22,349 bases of DNA from the NCBI GenBank assembly GCA_009103225.1, contig RHPI01000810.1:1232391-1254739 (forward strand), given 5' to 3'. The translations under genes were made by a program, and so were the position numbers. Source of the DNA: Chlorokybus atmophyticus. Taxonomy: Eukaryota; Plantae; Mesostigma and Chlorokybus algae. The notes beneath the pieces are model-generated. The model saw only the letters and a program-made list of their open reading frames with translations, did no database searches and had not been told where the DNA came from. This document shows positions 7,951 to 22,349 of this stretch, piece by piece; position 1 is the first letter of the stretch, and every line of letters begins with the position of its first letter.

Positions 7951-8580
7951 CCGTAAACGGATTGATGACGTAAGTTATCACCACTCGCTTTCAATGACGG
8001 CACCATGATGTTTGAACTTTACACGATCCAAGTACCATAGGTCTCGCAGCATCAGTTCAGGCAACGACGACTAACAATGGTATGTCTTTTTTTTTATTGT
8101 TTGGCTTGCTCATTGAAGTGAGCATAAATAAAACATGCACGCATTGCTTTTCGCGTGGATTTACAATCACAATAAAAGTGCTACAGGCGCGAAAGTCGAT
8201 CAAGCTTGCATTGACGGGTGCAAGATCCCACGTCAACTCTGCTATCACTGATGCTGCAGGATTAACACTAGCCTGACCGGTAACTGTTACAGTGCATTTT
8301 TGGTAATAGGCTCTATGCAATGTATGCGTAAAAATTAAACCCTCTTAGGAGAGCATTCGTAATGTTGTGTAGATACATGGAAAACTATTCGTTGAGCCAA
8401 TCAACACATGGGGATCTTGTGAAAAATCCTCGAGTGCATGTAGGTATACAGGCTGCGCACTGTTCCACTGTGCTGTCACACATACAGCTGTGACAAGTCG
8501 ATACGAGTTGCACAAATGAATAATACTTATGTTTGGTGACTTGTATTGAGGTTATTGCTTGGTTGCACAAGTAAGTGGCC

Positions 8581-8634: not shown

Positions 8635-8998
8635 AGTTGTGCTAGTAAGGGGTTGTGCGCAACTTGGCATGGTGTGACAAATACTCAACATAGTGTCACT
8701 AGTCTATACACTCTCCGCTATGCTCCTTCTCTTGCGCTTGGCCCCCACATCGATGCCAGTAATTGCACGGTCAGTATGGTATCTTTGGAAGCATGCATCC
8801 TTGCACAAATACACATTACAAGGCTCACACCAAAAGTACGATTTTCTGCCTCTGCCCCTTGCTTCCCCGGGCTGCAACTCTGCATTCCTTGCCTCCGCGC
8901 TACAAACCAAGCACTATCTTTGCTTGTTGGATGGATGTTTGCTTGTGAAATGGCGTCCGGAGAAGCGCCCAATCACATCCTTGTATGCATCTCGGTGC

Positions 8999-9501
8999 CT
9001 ATGGGGGCAGGAGGATGGTGATAAGGGGTAGTTGATAATGAGAGTGAGGGGCAGCATGAGGAGGGGGCTAGCAAACTGCCTGGCTGAGTGGGGGTGAGAT
9101 GATGGCAAGAATGAGGGTGGGGCATGCGCAAACTGATTGAGGGAGATGAGCATGAGGGTGGGCAGCATAAGGAGGAGCAGGGCGGAAACTGACTGAGGGA
9201 GAGGGGGAGAGGATGCGCATGAGGGTGAGGAGCAAAGGGAGGAGCATGGCATGGGCAAACTGACTGAGGGAGAGAGGGAGAGCATGAGGGTGAGGAGAAA
9301 GGGGAGTGCATGCGGAAACTGATTGAGGGGCAGGGGGAGAAGAGCATGAGGGTGGGAAGCAAGGGGAGTGCATGCGGAAACTGACTAAGGGAGAGAGGGA
9401 GTTGATGAGCATATGGGTGAGGAGCACGGGGATGAGCAGGGCATGCGCAAACTGATTGAGGGGGAGGGGGGAATGAATGAGTGACTGAAATTGCAACATA
9501 C
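8999..9501 (-). other. Intron 2 of the piggyBac transposase (503 nt, phase 2)
   Basis: Donor AG|GTATGT, acceptor pyrimidine tract plus CATAG|G. Removal joins ...GESTRR to HRDAYKDVIGRFSGRHF in frame, linking the core to the Cys-rich domain. Confidence 0.85.
9040..9470. repeat. Degenerate minisatellite, about 7 copies of 56-71 bp, G-rich on the plus strand
   Basis: Anchor AAACTG(A/C)(C/T)TGAGGG recurs at about 9073, 9130, 9186, 9257, 9316, 9378 and 9449, with GAGCATGAGGGTG between most copies. Confidence 0.9.
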
Positions 9502-10907
9502 CTCCGAGTTGACTCTCCAACCGGCCGCGCGTTGAGTGTGTTGTGCACAAGTTGCTCTTGTAGTTTGAGAACAAACTCCATGCGCGTGTACGTCGGGTTG
9601 GCGTGCACAAAGCACACCCACATGTTACCAACCGCCCCGTCAAACAACCCCCACCAGGCGCGGTGCCACCACTTCACCGCCTTCGATTGCTTTTGTATAC
9701 TATAGTTTGTCTTCAAGCAATACTTGTCATATTGATCAACGGCATCCTTGTGTAAATTATACACGACCGCACATTCCGGAGCAACTACATCAGCACGCCG
9801 ACCATCGTTTTGCAAGCGACTCACGACACCGCGATTCACACCATGACATGTGGAAAGGAAGAAGACGGGCTTCTTGTCCTCTTGTCTTCTTGTTCTTGTT
9901 GCGGTGTGTTTCCAACACACCGCAATCAAGCCATCACTAGGGGCAATAGCACACCTAAATGTTCCTTGCACGGCATGATTATCTAGTGTTATCATAGTAG
10001 AGGGATAACCCACACGGTTAGCCACGATAGTTCCCGTGCCATTGTATCCTTGTGATCTCAACCATATTAGTACTTTAGGTGAGGTAAACCCACGATCAAG
10101 GACAATGTGATGGTGTTCATACGGCACATTAGCTACTAGTTCTTTCACCACCCATGTGTGCAACTCGGGTCCAGGAAGCTTATCACAAATAATGAAATCG
10201 TAACAATAATATGTCTCCAAGTCACACGCTTGAAATACCTCAATACCAAACTTGTATGGTTTGCTAGGATTGTAGATACGAATAGGGCACATCTTATTAC
10301 GCATAGGATGGTGCGCTCATCAATGGTTATGTGTTTGCCGGGCTTATAGTTTTTACGAAATGTTTCACGTAGTGTATTGACTGCGGGTAGTATATGCCAT
10401 AGTCGGTATTCACGCGTGGCATGATCACTAGGGCGTTGGCTATTGTCATTCAAGTGAAAGTAGCGTTTTAGCTTGATAGCGTTTGAATGACATAAACCTT
10501 GCAAAGTTAGGAAATGTTATTGCCCCCATCAGACCGGTGCGCCCATAAGATTGCATGTCATTGGGTGTGTGGCATGCCATGGCTAGCGTGACCGACCCAT
10601 CGCAACAACTCTTGGCGTTTATCAGGAAGCCAAGCACGCCCTGTTTCCGCATCAATCACTGTGCGCTGTGCACTAGCGTATAGATTGGTTTGAATCACCG
10701 CATGATTCCAAAATGCCAATGGTAGGAAAAGGAGGAAGAGTTGTAAAGGTTTTTTACCACCTAAGTTTTGAATGCATGGACCAGTACGCCCCACAAATGT
10801 ATCAGCAGCAAGCCAGGTGTATACTTCATCTTCTCCACCCACACGCCAACGCACAGCACGCGGATCCACATCGGCATATGCATCACCACCCACTTCGTCA
10901 TCCATGC

Positions 10908-10953
10908 CTGCTAGTGTAATGCACAATATGTGTTGTGTTGTGGTGTGGCGTGT

Positions 10954-11010
<57 letters not shown>

Positions 11011-11024
11011 GTGTGAGTACACAC
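10908..11024 (-). other. Probable intron 1 of the piggyBac transposase (117 nt, phase 1)
   Basis: Donor CAG|GTGTGT, acceptor TAGCAG|G; contains the (CA)n microsatellite; removal gives ..DEEAETG-MDDEVGG.. in frame. Confidence 0.62.
10955..11015. repeat. (GT)n/(CA)n microsatellite, about 30 units with one interruption
   Basis: Seen directly in the sequence. Confidence 0.98.
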
Positions 11025-11195
11025 CTGTTTCAGCTTCCTCATCTGTAAGGAGAGGGGGTGCTCCTCCTCCCTTTACTCCCCTACCCCAACACCGCCACCA
11101 GCCACGCCGACCACACCGCCGCCGCCAGGGGCAACCGCCGGAGCAGAAGATCCCCTGGTTACGGCGGCTGCTGCGTTAGCAGTGCCGCCATACAG

Positions 11196-11235
11196 CTGAT
11201 ATCGACATGAGACATGAGTCTCATGTCGATATCAG
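11196..11235. repeat. Perfect inverted repeat with 18-bp arms and 4-nt loop
   Basis: CTGATATCGACATGAGAC-ATGA-GTCTCATGTCGATATCAG. Confidence 0.97.
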
Positions 11236-11381
11236 TGTTACAGTTAAGTAACACTACATTAGGGCCTTAACACTAGGTTAACGGCCCTAATACGGCTTAA
11301 TTGGCTGTATATACCCGTTGGGACCCTTATTTGATCCTAAATAAGGGCGGGGAACCTCTATAGAGGTAGCACTCCGTTACA
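11236..11381 (-). repeat. Putative short 3' LTR of the older element (146 bp)
   Basis: Begins TGTAAC right after the PPT, ends TGTAACA, contains TATATA at 11308-11313. Partner LTR not in window, so the left boundary is unconfirmed. Confidence 0.6.
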
Positions 11382-11504: not shown

Positions 11505-13841
<2,337 letters not shown>

Positions 13842-14513
13842 TGTGACGGTGCTCGTGCCTTGTTACCGGTGAGTTGGTCCAATCCACAACCCTCTCACCA
13901 AGACACGGTATTCACACCGGAACCTTGCCCCCTCTGCCAAGCACACACGCGCGCCCCGCCACTCGCGTACGCACGCGCATGCGCTCGAAGCTACACACCG
14001 ACTTGTGTAGCGCCTTGGATCGTCACACAAGCAAGCACACACCGGTGGGCACACGCTAGCAACCCCTGCTAACCACCACCAAGCTTGCACACAAGAAACT
14101 AGGGAGCTAAAGGTTGTATTGCAAGTTGTAGAATGTCACTTTTATACCTACCAGTCTGCACATGCTACTGTCTAGACGATTCTAGCGCTAGACGGAACTA
14201 GAAGCTAAGTTATTCTTGCAGAATCTTGTAGTACACTTCTAGACCTTTCCAACGCACCAAAGATCTCCTATTTTGCTGCTCATATGGTCAAGTTATACTA
14301 CTTGGCGCCAGGCCCTTCCAGAAATCTGGTCGAGCCCTTCTCGACTGGCCCTCCGTTTTCTGGCACCTTCCGGACTGGTCTTGGGGCCCCGGTCGATATC
14401 CGCGGCAGACTCATAACTCGCCGATATCCGCCACAAGTCATTAAAAACATGTACCTTACAAATAAGGCCTAAAACGGCCATGAAAATCACAGAATTTGGC
14501 CTTGACTGTTACA
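13842..14513 (-). repeat. 3' LTR of the young chromovirus (672 bp)
   Basis: Direct repeat of 19219-19889, immediately preceded on the minus strand by the polypurine tract. Confidence 0.97.
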
Positions 14514-17500
14514 CTCCTCCCCCCCCAGGTGAGCTTCGTCCTCGAAGCTCGCGAGGGTGTCGTCGAGCAAGATAGGCACGCACAACGTCTTGAGCATTAG
14601 TCAAGTGTGCCTCTGGCTCCCAGGATGCTTCATGCAACGGATAGCCCTTCCATTTCACTAAGAACTTGCGTACGCCATGCACAAACTTCTCACCAAGGAT
14701 GTCTTCTACCTCCCACTCGGGTTCACCGTCTGTGCCAACTTCGGGGGGTGGCCTTTCTGGCGGTTGTCCTCGATATGCTTTCAGAAGGGAGACGTGAAAA
14801 ACGGGGTGCACACGCATGGTGTCGGGTAGCTCCAACTTGTACGCCACGTCCGAGATAACTTTGCTGACCTTAAATGGTCCCAACCAGCGTTCATTCAGCT
14901 TGCGAACTCCCGTACGCACCTGGACGTGCTTCACGGAGAGTAACAGAATGTCGCCTTCCTGAAACGTGAGATGTCGGCGATGCGCGTCCGCGTACTGCTT
15001 CTGCCGATTTTGTGCCACCAATAACGCATCCCTAGCTGCCTTGTTAATGTCCGCGCACTTTGTAAGGAAATCATTAGCTGCCTCCACACGCACGTCATGT
15101 CGTCGCGGTGTCCATGCCGTCAACGGTGTCAATGGATGTTGCCCGTAGTTCATAAGGAAGGGAGTGACACCTGTGCTTGCATTGTGGTGGTTGTTGATCG
15201 CAAACTCAACCAACTCAAGCAGCTCCTCCCAATTGTCTTGTCGCGCGTTAACGTAGCAACGCAGCATGTCCTCGATCACACGGTTGGCCCGCTCCGTTTG
15301 CCCATCAGTTTGCGGGTGGAATGCCGTGCTAAACTTCAGTGTGGTACCCAGTGCACTATGCAGCGCCTCCCAAAACTTACTTGTAAAGCGCGGGTCGCGA
15401 TCACTCACAATGCTTCGTGGTAATCCATGAGAACGAAATACATGCTTCACGAACAAGCGTGCTGCCTCCGGTGCCGTGCAAGACTCACTACACGGTGCCA
15501 AGCGTACCATTTTGCTGGTTTCATCGACGAACACAAGTATAGCGTCGTACCCTTCTTTTGTCTTTGGTAGCCCCGTGATAAAGTCCATGGTAACTTGCTC
15601 CCACTTGGACAATGGCACAGGGAGAGGTTGCAGCAACCCACCTGGCTTTTGGTTGCTTGCCTTCACCCTTTGGCATGCGTCGCACAACGCCACGTAGTCG
15701 CGCACATCGCGATGCATCTCTCGCCAGTAAAAACGCTGTTTTAAGCTTGCCAAAGTCCTTTCCAACCCTTGGTGACCAGCAATGGGCACGTCATGAGCTT
15801 CCTTCAGCAACTTCACACGGATATGCGCGACGTTGGGGATGTACAAGCGCCCATGGTGCCACAGCAGCCCGTCGCGCATTGACCAGTGCCCACTTGTGTC
15901 CGTAGCTGTATTTTTCAGCTCTTGCAACACTTTCATACCCTCCGTGTCTTCACGAAGCACTTGCCGAATCTGGTCGGTCCACTCGGGCTGCACTTGAGCG
16001 AGTGCCTCAATTGCATTAAGCCGGCTCAGCGCGTCAGCAACACCATTTGACGTACCGGGCTTGTACTTGATATCGAAGTTAAAAAGTTGAAAGAACTCAA
16101 GCCATCGAGCTTGTCTGCGACTCAGATGAGGTTGTGTTTGTAAGTACCTCAGTGGAGAGTGATCCGTCTCAAGCACGAACTTTTTGCCTTCTAAGAAACA
16201 ACGCCATTGTCGTAGCGCCATGACTTGCGCTAAAAGTTCCTTCTCGTGCACGGGGTAATTCAACTCCGCACCACTCATCTTCTTGCTGAAGAATGCTACT
16301 GGTTGAAGGCCGTTGCCATGGTCTTGCTGCAAAACAGCTCCTACGGCTGTGTCGGACGCGTCGCAAGCCAAAATAAATGTCTTTTCCATGTTGGGGTGAG
16401 CCAGGACTGGTGCCTCCGTCAGCGCCTTCTTCAACGCAGCAAATGCATGTTCCTCTGTTGCTGACCAGCTCCAATGCTTTCCCTTCTTGAGTAGGGTAGT
16501 CAAGGGAGCAGCTATGCGCGAAAACCCCATGATAAACTTGCGATAATACCCCGCAAGGCCTAAAAAGGACATCACCTCCTTTACATTGGTCGGGGCAGCC
16601 CACTCGCGCACCACCTGCACTTTGTTGGGGTCCGGCTTGATGCCTTCATGCGACACAATGTGGCCTAGGTACTCCACCTCTCGAAGCAAGAATTTGCACT
16701 TCTGTAGCTGGGCGTACAACTTGTGTTCGCGCAAACGCTGCAACACGCGCCGTAGAAGTGCCACGTGCTCCTCCTTTGTTGTCGCGTACACCAAAATGTC
16801 GTCGAGGTACACGAGGACTCCCTTACCAATCAAGTCAGCAAAAACGCTGTTCATAAGCGTTTGAAATGTTGCCGGTGCGTTCGTAAGTCCGAAGGACATG
16901 ACCAACCACTCGTAGTGCCCATAACGTGTGTTAAAAGCTGTTTTCTCCACATCCTCGGGCGCGATGCGAATTTGGTGATAACCTCCAGCAAAATCAAGTG
17001 TTGTGAAGTACTGCGCACCTTGCAATTGCTCCAGCAACTCGTTGATACGTGGGAGTGGAAAGCAATTCCTCTTCGTGATGTTGATGAGAGCTCGGTAGTC
17101 GACGCACATGCGCAAGCTCCCGTTCTTCTTTCGTACAAACAAAATAAGTGCACGATAGGGGGACTTACTAGGCCTGATGTAGCCTCTTTTCAGCAAGTCC
17201 GCCACCTGCCTCTCGGCCTCTTCCAGTTCCAAAGGTGACAACTTGTATACGGGTCGATACGGTGGCTTGTGCACGCCCTCAATCAGCTCCACACGGTGGT
17301 CTACGCTCCGTGGAGGTGGTAGACCAGATGGAAGTCCGTCCACCATGATATCTTGATATTCTTTAACAAGTTTACACACCTCGGGGTCCATAGTAGCCGT
17401 CTGAACATCGTCACTCAGCTCCGGTGCTGACTTTGCAGTGTTTTCGCGCACCACGCACAACCATGCAGCCTTTGCCTTCCGTGGAGACAATAACTTCCTC

Positions 17501-18117
17501 AATTGCACATGAGAGATCTGGGCAATTGTCGTACCACCTAATTGTGCGTGCCGCGCCTCGATGATGTCCGATGCAGCTTGAATGGACTCTCCACCGTTTC
17601 GCTCGATGGTGAGCACGCGCTTCCTCCAATTGATGGCTGGATTATGTTGCCATAGCCACGGTAGTCCCAAAATCCCATCAAACCCGTTCCGTAGGGTGAT
17701 GCAGCAAAATCGCATGCTCTCCTTCATCTTCCCAATGCGAACGCACAACTCTTTGGTCATAAACGCAGCGCCATCACCTCCAGAGGGTGGCTCTCCATCA
17801 GCGAGCTTCACTTCACCTCCTCGTAATGACGAAAGCCAACCGTAACGCCGCGCGATATCAATACTCATGAAGTTGCTGTTGGCACCGCTATCAATCATGA
17901 GCTTACACTCTCTCCATCGTCCTTGGTCATCGCAAATGTGTGCTCGAAGCCCGAAGTACTTTGTTGTCTCCTCGTTTGCATAACTCACCACCATTGGCGC
18001 GTTCAAAGCCATCTCTTCTTGCTTCTTTAATGGAAATGTCACAGCATCCGTCCGTGCATGAGGCTCCTTCCTATCCCCAGCAGTAGCCTCCTCACCTACT
18101 GGGGGAAGTCGTTTTCC
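14509..18117 (-). CDS. pol: Pol polyprotein (protease, RT, RNase H, integrase, chromodomain) in the -1 frame relative to gag; frame open from 18156
   Basis: LMIDSGANSNF (PR); CVDYRAL, GYHQ, FGLTNAP, YLDD (RT); DASD, EKELLA, TDH, ADALSR (RH); H..H..C..C, MDF, SDRD, GQTER (INT); GPF; WEVEDIL..FLVKWKGY...SWEP (chromodomain). No internal stop over 1177+ codons. Start coordinate given is the predicted slip site. Confidence 0.97.
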   Translation of the reverse strand, partial: GKRLPPVGEEATAGDRKEPHARTDAVTFPLKKQEEMALNAPMVVSYANEETTKYFGLRAHICDDQGRWRECKLMIDSGANSNFMSIDIARRYGWLSSLRGGEVKLADGEPPSGGDGAAFMTKELCVRIGKMKESMRFCCITLRNGFDGILGLPWLWQHNPAINWRKRVLTIERNGGESIQAASDIIEARHAQLGGTTIAQISHVQLRKLLSPRKAKAAWLCVVRENTAKSAPELSDDVQTATMDPEVCKLVKEYQDIMVDGLPSGLPPPRSVDHRVELIEGVHKPPYRPVYKLSPLELEEAERQVADLLKRGYIRPSKSPYRALILFVRKKNGSLRMCVDYRALINITKRNCFPLPRINELLEQLQGAQYFTTLDFAGGYHQIRIAPEDVEKTAFNTRYGHYEWLVMSFGLTNAPATFQTLMNSVFADLIGKGVLVYLDDILVYATTKEEHVALLRRVLQRLREHKLYAQLQKCKFLLREVEYLGHIVSHEGIKPDPNKVQVVREWAAPTNVKEVMSFLGLAGYYRKFIMGFSRIAAPLTTLLKKGKHWSWSATEEHAFAALKKALTEAPVLAHPNMEKTFILACDASDTAVGAVLQQDHGNGLQPVAFFSKKMSGAELNYPVHEKELLAQVMALRQWRCFLEGKKFVLETDHSPLRYLQTQPHLSRRQARWLEFFQLFNFDIKYKPGTSNGVADALSRLNAIEALAQVQPEWTDQIRQVLREDTEGMKVLQELKNTATDTSGHWSMRDGLLWHHGRLYIPNVAHIRVKLLKEAHDVPIAGHQGLERTLASLKQRFYWREMHRDVRDYVALCDACQRVKASNQKPGGLLQPLPVPLSKWEQVTMDFITGLPKTKEGYDAILVFVDETSKMVRLAPCSESCTAPEAARLFVKHVFRSHGLPRSIVSDRDPRFTSKFWEALHSALGTTLKFSTAFHPQTDGQTERANRVIEDMLRCYVNARQDNWEELLELVEFAINNHHNASTGVTPFLMNYGQHPLTPLTAWTPRRHDVRVEAANDFLTKCADINKAARDALLVAQNRQKQYADAHRRHLTFQEGDILLLSVKHVQVRTGVRKLNERWLGPFKVSKVISDVAYKLELPDTMRVHPVFHVSLLKAYRGQPPERPPPEVGTDGEPEWEVEDILGEKFVHGVRKFLVKWKGYPLHEASWEPEAHLTNAQDVVRAYLARRHPRELRGRSSPGGGGV
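14514..14526 (-). other. Polypurine tract GGGGGGGGAGGAG
   Basis: Pure purine run directly abutting the TGTAAC start of the 3' LTR. Confidence 0.93.
18060..18117 (-). promoter_or_regulatory. Predicted -1 ribosomal frameshift signal: G_GAA_AAC, 6-nt spacer, H-type pseudoknot
   Basis: Heptamer 18117-18111 is in the gag frame within the 61-nt gag/pol overlap. Stem 1 is CCCCAG (18104-18099) with CTGGGG (18080-18075); stem 2 is GAGGCT (18090-18085) with AGCCTC (18065-18060). Confidence 0.72.
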
Positions 18118-19124
18118 TGCTCCACGCCATTTTGCTCCATGGTGTTGACGCGACGATCACGGCGAGGGTTGCCATCCGGTGTTGGCCTTTGCGTGCTTCG
18201 TTTGGGGCATCCGTACGCCAAATGCTCCGTCGACCCACACGCATAACACTTGCGCACACCTTTACCTCTTTCACCACGTCCGCCGTGCTTCGCCTCACTT
18301 CCATGCGTGTGTATGGCACCCACCTCCATTGGTGCAGGCCCAGAGTCAGCTCCACCTCCATTGGCAAGTGCTGAACTTGGTTCTCCTCGTCTCCATGCAT
18401 GTTGAAAGCCTCCCCGGGGCTGATCACCATGCCTTTGCCTCCAGTCAGTGTTTCTTGTGGTGGACTTGAAGTACAACGCGTCGAGACGCTCCGCGATGCG
18501 TATAGCCTCCGCGAGTGTCTTCGGGTCCCGTAGCTCCACTTCTTTACGCCCCAAAGGTTTTAAACCACGTGTATACCTGTCCAACTGCTCCTCCTCGGTC
18601 ATATTGGGTATGGACATCACCAATCGCTGAAACGCGGCCGTGTACGCCATCACCGACCCCATTTGCACAAGGGCTGCAAGTTTGTCGCGTGCGGCCTTCA
18701 CGCTCTCAACGGGAACAAATTGATGCCTGACCTCCAGTGCCAACTCTTCCATGGTGGTCAATGGTAGCGCCAACCCGTTTGCAACACGCGTACATCGATG
18801 CCTCCACCACACAAGTGCTGCACCTTCAAGCAATGTCGCTGCAACCTCCACGTGCAGATGCGTGGGCACCTCCGTGAGCTTCAACCAAGACGATACTTGA
18901 AAAATCCATTCATCCACTGCATCTCCATCACGTTGACCCTTGAATGGCTTGGGCTTTGGCACCTTCACATGCACGCGCGAGCTTGATGCCATGGGAATTT
19001 GTACACGCGCCATCGCATGCTCATACGCCTCGCGTTGTGCTTGTGCCGCCGCTTGAGTGTGATGAAGCTCTTCCCTCAGTGCCAAGATGGCAGCTTGAAG
19101 CTCTTCCATGCGAGCATCCTCCAT
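18096..19124 (-). CDS. gag: Gag of the young chromovirus (about 342 aa from ATG 19124; the ORF track starts upstream at a GTG)
   Basis: N-terminal coiled-coil-like segment, KVPKPKPFKG..DEW capsid-type motif, CCHC zinc knuckle CYACGSTEHLAYGC, TAG stop. Confidence 0.95.
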   Translation of the reverse strand: MEDARMEELQAAILALREELHHTQAAAQAQREAYEHAMARVQIPMASSSRVHVKVPKPKPFKGQRDGDAVDEWIFQVSSWLKLTEVPTHLHVEVAATLLEGAALVWWRHRCTRVANGLALPLTTMEELALEVRHQFVPVESVKAARDKLAALVQMGSVMAYTAAFQRLVMSIPNMTEEEQLDRYTRGLKPLGRKEVELRDPKTLAEAIRIAERLDALYFKSTTRNTDWRQRHGDQPRGGFQHAWRRGEPSSALANGGGADSGPAPMEVGAIHTHGSEAKHGGRGERGKGVRKCYACGSTEHLAYGCPKRSTQRPTPDGNPRRDRRVNTMEQNGVEQENDFPQ

Positions 19125-19198
19125 CTCCACTAACACACTACACTCCGCTTCCGAATGAAAAGTGTAAACGCCCACACACTTCCTCTCTCACCTTCGTA

Positions 19199-19216
19199 AA
19201 CCGTGCTCCGATACCA
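19199..19216 (-). other. Primer-binding site, tRNA-iMet type (TGGTATCGGAGCACGGTT)
   Basis: Starts 2 nt after the 5' LTR with TGG (complement of the tRNA CCA end); one base differs from the common plant iMet PBS TGGTATCAGAGC. Confidence 0.88.
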
Positions 19217-19218
19217 GT

Positions 19219-19889
19219 TGTGACGGTGCTCGTGCCTTGTCACCTGTGAGTTGGTCCAATCCACAACCCTCTCACCAAGACACGGTATTCACACCGGAAC
19301 CTTGCCCCCTCTGCCAAGCACACACGCGCGCCCCGCCACTCGCGTACGCACGCGCATGCGCTCGAAGCTACACACCGACTTGTGTAGCGCCTTGGATCGT
19401 CACACAAGCAAGCACACACCGGTGGGCACACGCTAGCAACCCCTGCTAACCACCACCAAGCTTGCACACAAGAAACTAGGGAGCTAAAGGTTGTATTGCA
19501 AGTTGTAGAATGTCACTTTTATACCTACCAGTCTGCACATGCTACTGTCTAGACGATTCTAGCGCTAGACGGAACTAGAAGCTAAGATATTCTTGCAGAA
19601 TCTTGTAGTATACTTCTAGACCTTTCCAACGCACCAAAGATCTCCTAATTTGCTGCTCATATGGTCAAGTTATACTACTTGGCGCCAGGCCCTTCCAGAA
19701 ATCTGGTCGAGCCCTTCTCGACTGGCCTCCGTTTTCTGGCACCTTCCGGACTGGTCTTGGGGCCCCGGTCGATATCCGCGGCAGACTCATAACTCGCCGA
19801 TATCCGCCACAAGTCATTAAAAACATGTACCTTACAAATAAGGCCTAAAACGGCCATGAAAATCACAGAATTTGGCCTTGACTGTTACA
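19219..19889 (-). repeat. 5' LTR of the young chromovirus (671 bp)
   Basis: Minus strand reads TGTAACAG...CCGTCACA. Direct repeat of 13842-14513 with 5 substitutions and one 1-nt indel by manual alignment. Followed by the PBS. Confidence 0.97.
19517..19523 (-). promoter_or_regulatory. Candidate TATA box (TATAAAA) in the 5' LTR; copy at 14140-14146 in the 3' LTR
   Basis: GGTATAAAAG on the element sense strand near the LTR midpoint; position plausible but untested. Confidence 0.55.
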
Positions 19890-19894
19890 CTGCC
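19890..19894. repeat. Target-site duplication CTGCC, right copy
   Basis: CTGCC directly follows the LTR CA and matches 13837-13841. Confidence 0.95.
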
Positions 19895-21347
19895 GGCGCA
19901 TTAGTCAATCCAAAAGGTAACACTTTGTATTGATAATGGCCCGACGGTGTTCTGAATGCTGTTTTGTAAACATCAGAAGGATGAATCCGGATTTGATGAT
20001 ACCCACTTGTCAAGTCCAACGTATTAAAGTACGCATTTCCCGACAGTTTAACAAACACATCATCAATCCGGGGCAACGGGTATCGATTCTTTACCGTGAT
20101 CTTGTTCAAAGCACGGTAATCCACACACATGCGCAGCTTTCCATTCTCTTTTCATCACAAACAAGATGGGCGCGCCGAAGGGTGAAGAACTCGGTTCAAT
20201 CAATCCCTTTTCCAATAACTCTTTGATTTGAGTTTCCATTTCCCCCCTCTCTCGGGGGCTCAGCCTATATATAGGCCGAAACGGAGGCTCACTGTCAGGA
20301 ATGAGTGGTATTGTGTGTCCGACACCTCGATTAGGAGGTAAGCCTGGCAATTCATCTGAGAACACATTTTGATACTTCTCAATGATGTCTGCAACACCTT
20401 CTGTGTTTCTCGGCACAAAGTCGTCCGACGACGTTAAGTGTACCAGAAAAGCCGGTGTGTTTTTGCGCAACGCACGTTTCACTTGCAGTGCAGTGAGTAG
20501 CGCAGGGTCGGGCTGCTTGTGGTCCAAGCTATGTGACCCTTTCACAGACAATGTTACACGCTTACGACCTTTCTTTACCGTGCACAAACGTGCGCCAGTA
20601 TCCAATGTCATTTTGACATTTTCCTGCCATTCCTGTCCTAATACCACATCAACACCTGATATGTCGATGGATACCACTATGAAAGTAAGAGTGGCATGAT
20701 AATTACCAATCTTTACTTTCATTTTTATTTCCCCTTTCACTGGCAACGCACCCCCCNTTCACTGGCAACGCCCCCCCCGCACAGGCAGCTGAAACTGCTG
20801 AGGGTTTACACGCTATCTTGTTGCGCACAACCCATTGTTCCTCAACGAAGTTGTGTGTTGCACCAGTGTCAATCAGGAACGAACTGTTTACACCTTGCAT
20901 TGTGCCACTAAATGTCCACAACAGAGGTACCACCCGTCCTTGAAATGTAGCCAAGAGTCCGTGACTAATGCGAGGGTTGATCAATATGGCTGACAACCGT
21001 ACTGTCCTTGTTTCACGCTTGCTGAATTGCTTCAACACAGACCCTCCGCGAGTATGTTTTAACCATGGGCCATGATACTTTGGCACCATCACCACCATAC
21101 TCAAGGTTCTGTGCTTATTCTGCAACTCAGTCAATGCATGCAACACATCGGTAAGCATGTTGAACTCCACATGTACAAGCACACAAGCATTCTTTTCCAC
21201 TTTTTCAACATCAAAGAGTGGCAACTTGTCATGTGCTTGCCATGCATGTGTCATTACATGCACTTGAGACAGATCATCAAACCAGTTTGCTGCTTGCATC
21301 TCAAGCAACTGGCTATCAACCGCATCTACATCAGTCACGGCATAATC
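19890..21347 (-). pseudogene. pol: 5' part of the older pol: ~140-aa unknown region, aspartic protease, RT N-terminal half
   Basis: FLIDTGATHNF (PR), [49 protein letters not shown]. Frame breaks at about 20757 (duplication around an N) and about 20155 (one extra A). Confidence 0.93.
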
Positions 21348-22349
21348 CTATTCAACCTTCTTGGCCTTGCCCTTCTTGGCGGGGCAGTTCTTCGCAATGT
21401 GGCCCGGCTGGTGACAGACGTAACAGGTGCGAGCCGCAGCGGGTGTAGCACCACCAGCAGATGTGCCACCGGTCGGAGGCGTGTATGTCTTCGCTTTCTT
21501 TGCCGTGTGCGCACTCGGCTGAGGGTAACGCTTTCCTCCCACCCCGTGCGGCTTGGCCGCAACTGCCACATGTGCCTTTTCCTGCACCGCCGTGTCATCA
21601 TTGTACAGGTACACGCTCAGCTTCTGCAGCTGGGCCAAGTCCTTAGGAACCCAAGGAAGTCCCGTTGCCGTGTTGTACTGCAGCTGATCGCGCACACGCG
21701 CATCCAAGCCGCGCTTGTACAACTCAAACTGCTCAGCCTTGTCCATGGGCATGAGGCCACTGTTCACGCGGCCCACCAACGCTTGGAACTCCTGCAGATA
21801 GACTGAAGCCGTTCTGCCATTCTGTCGCAGCTTGTTGAGCTTGTTGCGAGCCTGAGTAGCTGGATCCATGCCACCATAGCGCTCCACAAGGAACTTGAAT
21901 AGTGCCTCCACTGTCTTAGTTGCACCATCCTCTGTCTGCCTCGCCCACTCGGCGAGAGCGTCAGATGGCATGAGCAACTCAGCAACAGCAATGTGCTCAC
22001 CAACTGGGCGCTTCAGTGCTGTCAAATAGTGCTCAACAGTAACCACCCAATCATGGATGCTGACACTGCCGTTGGGCTTGAACTTCTCAGGCTTGTTCAG
22101 TGCTGTAACCGGCAGCCCCGCTGATGCACCAGCTGCTGAAGTAGCACCCGCCACCTGTTGGCGCAGCGCCACCAACTCAGACTGCATAGCATCAAGGCGT
22201 GCCGTCAACTGCACTCGGCCAGTCAACTTGTCTTCCAAGTTAGGTCCCAAGTACCAGAACACGTCCTTGCAACGCTGTGAGGTTTCCACTCCCAAGTTGG
22301 CCAAAGCCTCAAACGCCATTCGCTTGCCTTGGTAAGGGAGAGGCTTATC
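21348..22349 (-). CDS. gag: Gag of the older chromovirus (first ATG in window 22319; frame stays open to the window edge)
   Basis: LNKPEKFKPNG..IHDWV capsid-type motif, ARNKLNKLRQ, YKRGL, zinc knuckle CYVCHQPGHIAKNC, TAG stop. Confidence 0.92.
   Translation of the reverse strand, partial: DKPLPYQGKRMAFEALANLGVETSQRCKDVFWYLGPNLEDKLTGRVQLTARLDAMQSELVALRQQVAGATSAAGASAGLPVTALNKPEKFKPNGSVSIHDWVVTVEHYLTALKRPVGEHIAVAELLMPSDALAEWARQTEDGATKTVEALFKFLVERYGGMDPATQARNKLNKLRQNGRTASVYLQEFQALVGRVNSGLMPMDKAEQFELYKRGLDARVRDQLQYNTATGLPWVPKDLAQLQKLSVYLYNDDTAVQEKAHVAVAAKPHGVGGKRYPQPSAHTAKKAKTYTPPTGGTSAGGATPAAARTCYVCHQPGHIAKNCPAKKGKAKKVE

Follow-up and report, generated by a model that had tools for sequence, protein, structure and literature searches.

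Introduction

Did a cut-and-paste DNA transposon of an early-branching streptophyte alga carry spliceosomal introns in its transposase gene, or is the locus that suggests so a remnant filled with simple repeats, or even a former host gene? This question is raised by a transposase gene on the minus strand of a stretch of Chlorokybus atmophyticus DNA (assembly GCA_009103225.1, contig RHPI01000810.1, positions 1,232,391 to 1,254,739). The whole stretch analyzed, 22,349 nucleotides in length, is called the window here, and all positions are those of the window unless another sequence is named. An earlier note on this DNA, made from its letters alone, had described a piggyBac transposase split by two introns and had offered two readings, an intron-bearing piggyBac family or a once-domesticated gene in decay. 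We found that 8335/8704–11270 (−) is a non-functional copy of a cut-and-paste DNA transposon of the piggyBac superfamily, from a clade that occurs in streptophytes. Of the proposed introns, the one at 8999–9501 is probably a former intron gained within the lineage, while the other is not supported.

Identity of the transposase

The minus-strand sequence at 8704–10905 is a piggyBac-superfamily transposase. The Pfam profile named in the earlier note, DDE_Tnp_1_7 (PF13843), matched 9504–10304(−) over positions 139–347 of its 349, at an E value of 2.4e-18 and a score of 67 bits (cut-off 22.4). A further, weak match to the same profile (positions 85–135) was obtained on 10307–10504(−), and zf-Tnp_2 matched 8707–8910(−) at E 1.8e-4 and 22.4 bits, slightly below its cut-off of 24. 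Compared with solved transposases, the family profile matched piggyBat (9c0f) at E 4e-48 and T. ni piggyBac (6x67) at E 5e-32; the 66-aa piece holding the first catalytic Asp, searched alone against the PDB with phmmer, gave no match.

In the profile alignment to 6x67, the family motifs DERT, LDRGF, and VDQ(F/Y)D aligned with T. ni D268, D346, and D447/D450. The corresponding codons of the window copy lie at 10321–10319 (D1), 10097–10095 (D2), 9737–9735 (D3), and 9728–9726 (D4). The statement that all three catalytic Asp motifs survive therefore holds for the codons but not for a single reading, as D1 is out of frame with D2 and D3, with a frameshift between them. The C-terminal finger of other piggyBacs binds the transposon ends. 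In the window copy, this Cys-rich domain (8707–8913(−), CLVC...WCEPC...LC...C...H) is closed by a natural stop at 8706–8704 and retains seven of seven invariant Cys/His columns (C, C, C, C, C, C, H) of the family alignment A1. Taken together, the Pfam matches, the structure-profile matches, and the finger columns confirm that this is a piggyBac sequence with three Asp residues and a Cys-rich domain.

State of the gene and its public model

Because it contains three frameshifts and an in-frame TAG, the copy is a non-functional pseudogene, and the decay assumed in the earlier note was thus borne out. When the window was searched with relatives by tblastn, the homologous reading crossed frames −3, −1, −2, and −1 in turn. 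It starts with an N-terminal piece in frame −3 (10588–10905; MDDEV...VRWRV...KKPLQLFLLFLPLAFW..., matched by P0006, P0003, P0005, and P0010), in which the first in-frame ATG is at 10905 and which can be followed to ~10590. A frameshift at ~10587 (net +1/−2, WVGH|LAMACH) leads into a frame −1 piece (10473–10592; LAMACHTPNDMQSYGRTGLMGAITFPNFARFMSFKRYQ, matched by P0007 and P0002), followed to ~10480, and a second one, within or close to an A-run at ~10475–10498, leads into the frame −2 piece with the D268-equivalent D1 (10307–10498; ...RYFHLNDNSQRP...ITIDERTI), which was found by tblastn and carries the weak PF13843 match. At ~10307 one C is missing, and this 1-nt deletion (DERTI|PMRNKMCPIR) returns the reading to frame −1 for the DDE/RNase-H-like catalytic core with D2 and D3/D4 (9502–10304), the part matched by PF13843, piggyBat, and T. 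ni piggyBac. The earlier note had placed the start codon at 11191, which had to be given up: a TAA follows after 10 codons, and the homologous frame has its first ATG at 10905.

Beyond the 503-nt segment that follows the core, frame −3 meets a TAG at 8916–8914, after the ...KHPSNKQR of the linker and before the first CxxC, a position at which the Chlorokybus paralogues Chrsp57S06834 (P0002) and Chrsp80S07896 (P0023) have W and Y, respectively. The core has also been lengthened by an 8-bp repeat (TCTTGTCC on the plus strand; TRF 9872–9893, period 8), which adds 10 in-frame residues, HTATRTRRQE, as a 30-nt insertion at 9908–9879. This insertion is without counterpart in relatives, and CWK|DKKPVFF is contiguous in both P0002 and P0003. 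With three frameshifts and the TAG, the copy does not have the intact transposase frame of an autonomous element.

The core is 100% identical to the JGI Chlorokybus model Chlat1/612 (Chrsp103S01034, 328 aa), in agreement with the green-algal origin proposed in the earlier note, although the host is more exactly an early-branching streptophyte alga. The public model (8900–10292) begins past the last frameshift. Its donor, 9502|9501, is the one proposed here and its acceptor, at 8900, is a different one, so that its intron, 9501..8900, takes out not only the nonsense codon but also conserved linker residues and the first CxxC. Chrsp103S01034 looks like a truncated prediction that dodges the stop codon, an artefact rather than a real product.

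The candidate intron between core and finger

Core and linker are separated by 8999–9501 (−), a candidate phase-2 spliceosomal intron of 503 nt with the junction letters ...CGGAG|GTATGTTGC...CCTGCCCCCATAG|GCACCG (donor AG|GTATGT, acceptor CCCCCATAG|G). On the coding strand, 76% of its letters are pyrimidines, and it ends CATAG|G; a consensus donor, a pyrimidine tract, and a YAG acceptor are thus found at the exact boundaries. According to the earlier note, removing the segment (AG|GTATGT...TAG|G) fuses the core in frame to the Cys-rich part, and both the coordinates and the frame were confirmed: the reading passes from frame −1 to frame −3 and on into ...HRDAYKDVIGRFSGRHF... and the Cys-rich domain.

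The restored reading is collinear with the homologues. The linker part behind the segment (8917–8998(−), frame −3, (R)HRDAYKDVIGRFSGRHFTSKHPSNKQR) is collinear with ...QQAAFKDPQGRFRGGHFPDKHPSSKQR of P0002. Removing 9501..8999 yields the spacing of RP, 16 residues, and GRF that is found in P0002, with G, R, A, K, and D identical in register, and a linker of 34 residues, compared with 33–35 in the closer relatives.

The 8-mer AGGTATGT occurred a single time in 44,698 positions (both window strands), at the 9502/9501 donor junction, and the looser pattern AGGT[AG][AT]GT occurred three times in the same 44,698 positions. Candidate junctions were translated by script to count frame-compatible splice pairs, and the exons were searched individually. 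This procedure enumerated 18 GT...AG pairs with an open, frame-correct junction around the segment, among which 9501/8999 had by far the best donor and acceptor and was also the one to match the P0002 spacing. The species-trained JGI predictor had chosen the same donor, 9502|9501.

Based on these sequence features, we consider it probable that 8999–9501 is a former lineage-specific spliceosomal intron which was enlarged by a 62-bp minisatellite. The sequence shows that the ancestral gene encoded an acidic N-terminus, a DDD RNase-H-like core with an insertion domain, a linker of ~34 residues, and a CxxC...CxxC...C...C...H finger. In the history that we propose, the Chlorokybus lineage of the element would have acquired an intron between core and linker, inside which the 62-bp minisatellite would later have expanded, and while the element was active, linker and finger would have been spliced to the core at AG|GTATGT...CATAG|G. 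The present copy is inactivated by one nonsense codon, three small frameshifts, and the products of slippage, namely the 8-bp repeat and the CA microsatellite.

Several observations weigh against this reading. An intron position shared with relatives was not found: all seven relatives compared at the DNA level are contiguous at the core/linker junction (7/7), a comparison that comprised Klebsormidium nitens (L016), Adiantum nelumboides (L007, L008), and environmental sequences (L001–L004), with the Chlorokybus paralogues not among them. Consequently, an intron at this site must have been gained by the Chlorokybus lineage. As the copy is dead and contains other slippage insertions, the insertion of a repeat after its death is a live alternative. 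The agreement with the JGI donor is not independent of the sequence signal used, and the JGI acceptor (8900) differs. Gene-model introns in this family can be spurious, as in the Klebsormidium model, which drops a conserved in-frame motif. Finally, a generic search for terminal inverted repeats, a comparison of all TTAA × TTAA pairs, and a motif search gave no convincing pair, leaving the limits of the element uncertain. Of the spliceosomal intron described in the earlier note, the unique donor, the frame, and the P0002 spacing speak for it, and the seven relatives without an intron there speak against it.

A 443-aa open reading frame (ORF) that continues through the minisatellite was considered as a real protein and rejected. 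Since the strand is 76% pyrimidine, all three frames remain open through the minisatellite, and no homologue was found for the extension of this ORF into it.

Rival readings of the segment

Among the alternatives, the one that survives best, although we regard it as unlikely, is that the 503-nt segment is a minisatellite-bearing insertion or expansion in an already dead copy, with GT...AG ends by coincidence. The segment is nearly all tandem repeat, as a minisatellite of ~62 bp in about five copies (9143–9470; TRF, direct-repeat family D2) makes up most of it, and the copy contains other slippage products, namely the 8-bp repeat at 9872–9893 and (CA)n at 10929–11015. Nothing is present at the site in the seven relatives with DNA, and with 18 frame-compatible GT-AG pairs nearby, a GT-AG pair alone is cheap. 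However, coincidence does not readily account for the unique 8-mer AGGTATGT exactly where the frame and the paralogue spacing demand a boundary; given three looser matches per 44,698 positions, a strong donor would fall within the slack of ~25 nt by chance in ~0.2% of cases. Moreover, the segment ends show no target-site duplication or terminal repeat except for a 2-nt AG.

The absence of the intron from the relatives, which makes a gain necessary, and the repeat-rich sequence with strong splice signals at its extreme ends would also be compatible with intron gain by transposition, through an introner-like mobile element equipped with splice sites of its own. We give this only a slim chance, because the segment has neither terminal inverted repeats nor a target-site duplication, and no second copy of it was found in the window or in the relatives' loci examined; the same holds for its 62-bp minisatellite. 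The combined proposal, in which a cut-and-paste transposon gained a new transposase intron in the Chlorokybus lineage, possibly via an introner-like, repeat-bearing insertion with its own splice sites, is likewise improbable as it stands.

The weakest alternative, raised in the earlier note, takes the locus not for a transposon copy but for a once-domesticated PGBD-like host gene with introns that is now in decay, and it is very improbable: the locus is annotated as a gene (Chrsp103S01034) and the intron-bearing piggyBac derivatives PGBD5, PiggyMac, and TPB2 are domesticated genes (PMC5381638), but instead of an intact, conserved single-copy host gene we found a broken ORF among nested retrotransposons, three diverged, individually damaged paralogues of one clade in one genome, catalytic and finger residues conserved as in mobile relatives, and TTAA-CCCT-like candidate ends. 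The paralogue clade and the retrotransposon flanks therefore favor a resident transposon family over a domesticated gene.

The second proposed intron

The second intron of the earlier note, 10908–11024 (−), has the coordinates given there, and nothing in the analysis required its removal. The stretch comprises GTGTGT, a (CA)n microsatellite (TRF 10929–11015), and CAG. As its 117 nt equal 39 codons in frame, removing it restores nothing, and frame −3 is open across it with or without removal. Its composition (C49, A48, T11, and G9 of 117) leaves the 3′ part A/C-rich and pyrimidine-poor (17% T, 42% C). In the homologous frame, an ATG first appears at 10905, three bases past the proposed acceptor, and no in-frame ATG, GTG, or TTG was found between 11175 and 11022, though the frame is open upstream to 11175; hence there is no upstream coding exon with a start codon. 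An intron at this place is unsupported and, in our estimation, doubtful.

Just upstream of the CA stretch, an acidic TDEEAET resembles the acidic N-terminal region of relatives, and the repeat may therefore sit within former coding sequence. Most likely, the CA stretch simply grew as a microsatellite, within the acidic N-terminal region or the leader, and is not an intron.

Element ends and genomic surroundings

Typical piggyBac ends begin CCCT (PMC10175614). The best TTAA pair around the copy had 8 of 13 matches. On the 5′ side, the best candidate is TTAA (11270–11267) followed by GGCCCTAATG (11257–11270(−)), a weak candidate with no inverted partner downstream. On the 3′ side, the coding strand reads ...CTAAGAGGGT, ending AGAGGGT, before the TTAA at 8338–8335, which read inward is TTAA followed by ACCCTCTTAG; this candidate is also weak. 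Both candidate ends contain CCCT, and their mutual match is weak. The contigs of relatives L001–L003 held no usable TTAA pairs.

A perfect 18-bp palindrome with a 4-nt spacer (inverted repeat I4; 11196–11235, arms 11196–11213 and 11218–11235) occupies the 5′ subterminal region. In addition, several TTAA sites within 11196–11296 are surrounded by a mirror pair, ATTAGGGCC-GTTAAC-CTAG-TGTTAA-GGCCCTAAT. Such an arrangement could represent two abutting piggyBac-type ends, and the mirror copy of the 5′ candidate, ATTAGGGCCGTTAA (11279–11292(+)), may be the end of a neighboring element.

The upstream flank (11621–22319) consists of nested Ty3/gypsy elements. A young, complete Ty3/gypsy chromovirus, with gag at 18099–19175 and pol including a chromodomain at 14512–18042, is bounded by repeats resembling long terminal repeats (13842–14141/14350–14515 and 19219–19518/19726–19891) that are 99–100% identical. 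It is hosted by an older gypsy element, of which gag and protease (20706–22319) and reverse transcriptase, RNase H, and integrase (11621–13882) were recognized. The integrase of the older element (11621–12712) ends immediately upstream of the piggyBac copy.

Paralogues and relatives

An exhaustive phmmer search returned 1,780 cluster representatives at E ≤ 1e-3. Only 17 of them reach E ≤ 1e-30, and the family is a small, distinct branch of the superfamily. The closest members are the two Chlorokybus paralogues, with P0002 at 74–76% and P0023 at 56%; the other named members are several Adiantum nelumboides proteins and a Klebsormidium nitens "transposase". In a quick maximum-likelihood tree with SH-aLRT support, the window copy and P0002 were sisters (100) and P0023 joined them at 98. 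This Chlorokybus clade fell into a 97-supported group with Klebsormidium and environmental sequences, and the Adiantum fern copies were placed nearby. Both paralogue models appear damaged: P0002 has lost the finger and has one scrambled stretch, and in P0023 the linker is shortened and there is a gap inside the protein. A metagenome scan with the family alignment yielded only relatives of 22–33%, which were of no use for comparing intron positions.

Introns were recognized elsewhere in the clade. The environmental contig L002 (P0005; Logan SRR11558593) contains three clear GT-AG introns in the gene's N-terminal part, at ~827–1093, 1275–1604, and 2167–2306 of its own sequence, with donors GTACTT, GTATGC, and GTATGT, T-rich bodies, and YAG acceptors; the clade of the window copy thus includes intron-bearing members, which counts in favor of an intron at 8999–9501. 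In K. nitens DF237378.1, the annotated 78-nt intron (L016:4592–4669) keeps the frame and contains the codons of the conserved LTPLQVFLYLVPLEWF motif. The annotation of this intron is probably an artefact, the gene being one uninterrupted ORF.

An N-terminal module of ~60 residues, FG..WAK...W.V.F, is common to many full-length relatives and lies upstream of an acidic/AT-hook-like region (residues ~15–100 of P0006, P0024, P0025, and P0027; L002:394–567). No Pfam domain was found in this module, and searching for it in the window gave only noise. The module might be a targeting or chromatin-reading domain.

In the literature on piggyBac together with Chlorokybus or streptophyte algae, no description of such elements was found. 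The earlier note regarded the superfamily as poorly represented in the green lineage; this view is dated, as green-lineage piggyBac was reported in 2025 (PMC13461360). The same work defines a piggyBac "Group 4: fungi, land plants and algae" (PMC13461360), and the clade of Chlorokybus, Klebsormidium, Adiantum, and environmental sequences is a candidate member of this group.

Significance and comparison with known systems

The locus adds a documented Chlorokybus member, with diverged paralogues, to a little-studied green-lineage branch of piggyBac, and it marks the public model Chrsp103S01034 as an artefact, truncated and built on a pseudogene. Being one dead copy, the locus is without functional consequence for the alga. 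The probable lineage-specific intron is its only unusual trait. Should this intron be confirmed in the sister copies, it would constitute a clear lineage-specific intron gain in a transposase gene, relevant to the origin of introns, while leaving current views unchanged. If the gain were introner-like, a mobile element of an early-branching streptophyte would offer a case of intron gain that is dated and traceable.

With T. ni piggyBac and Myotis piggyBat, the window copy shares the DDE_Tnp_1_7 core with its DDD(+D) residues, a Cys-rich finger at the C-terminus, and the order of these domains. Unlike them, it is broken, and its identity to them is only ~30%. PiggyBac-like elements have matched CCYT inverted repeats of 13–19 bp and a TTAA duplication; around the window copy, only candidate ends were found. 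While classic piggyBac elements have a single uninterrupted ORF, the window copy has a probable intron between core and finger.

With the copies of Klebsormidium nitens, Adiantum nelumboides, and environmental sequences, it shares 41–49% core identity, the linker length, the finger pattern, and the grouping in the tree. In contrast to the window copy, these green-lineage relatives are contiguous at the core/linker junction, and many have the long N-terminal extension with the FG..WAK module. As in PGBD5, PiggyMac, and TPB2 (PMC5381638), a piggyBac-derived coding sequence is combined with spliceosomal introns, in the window copy with a candidate one. Whereas those three are intact, conserved host genes, the window copy is one of several decaying copies and retains a catalytic triad of the mobile type.

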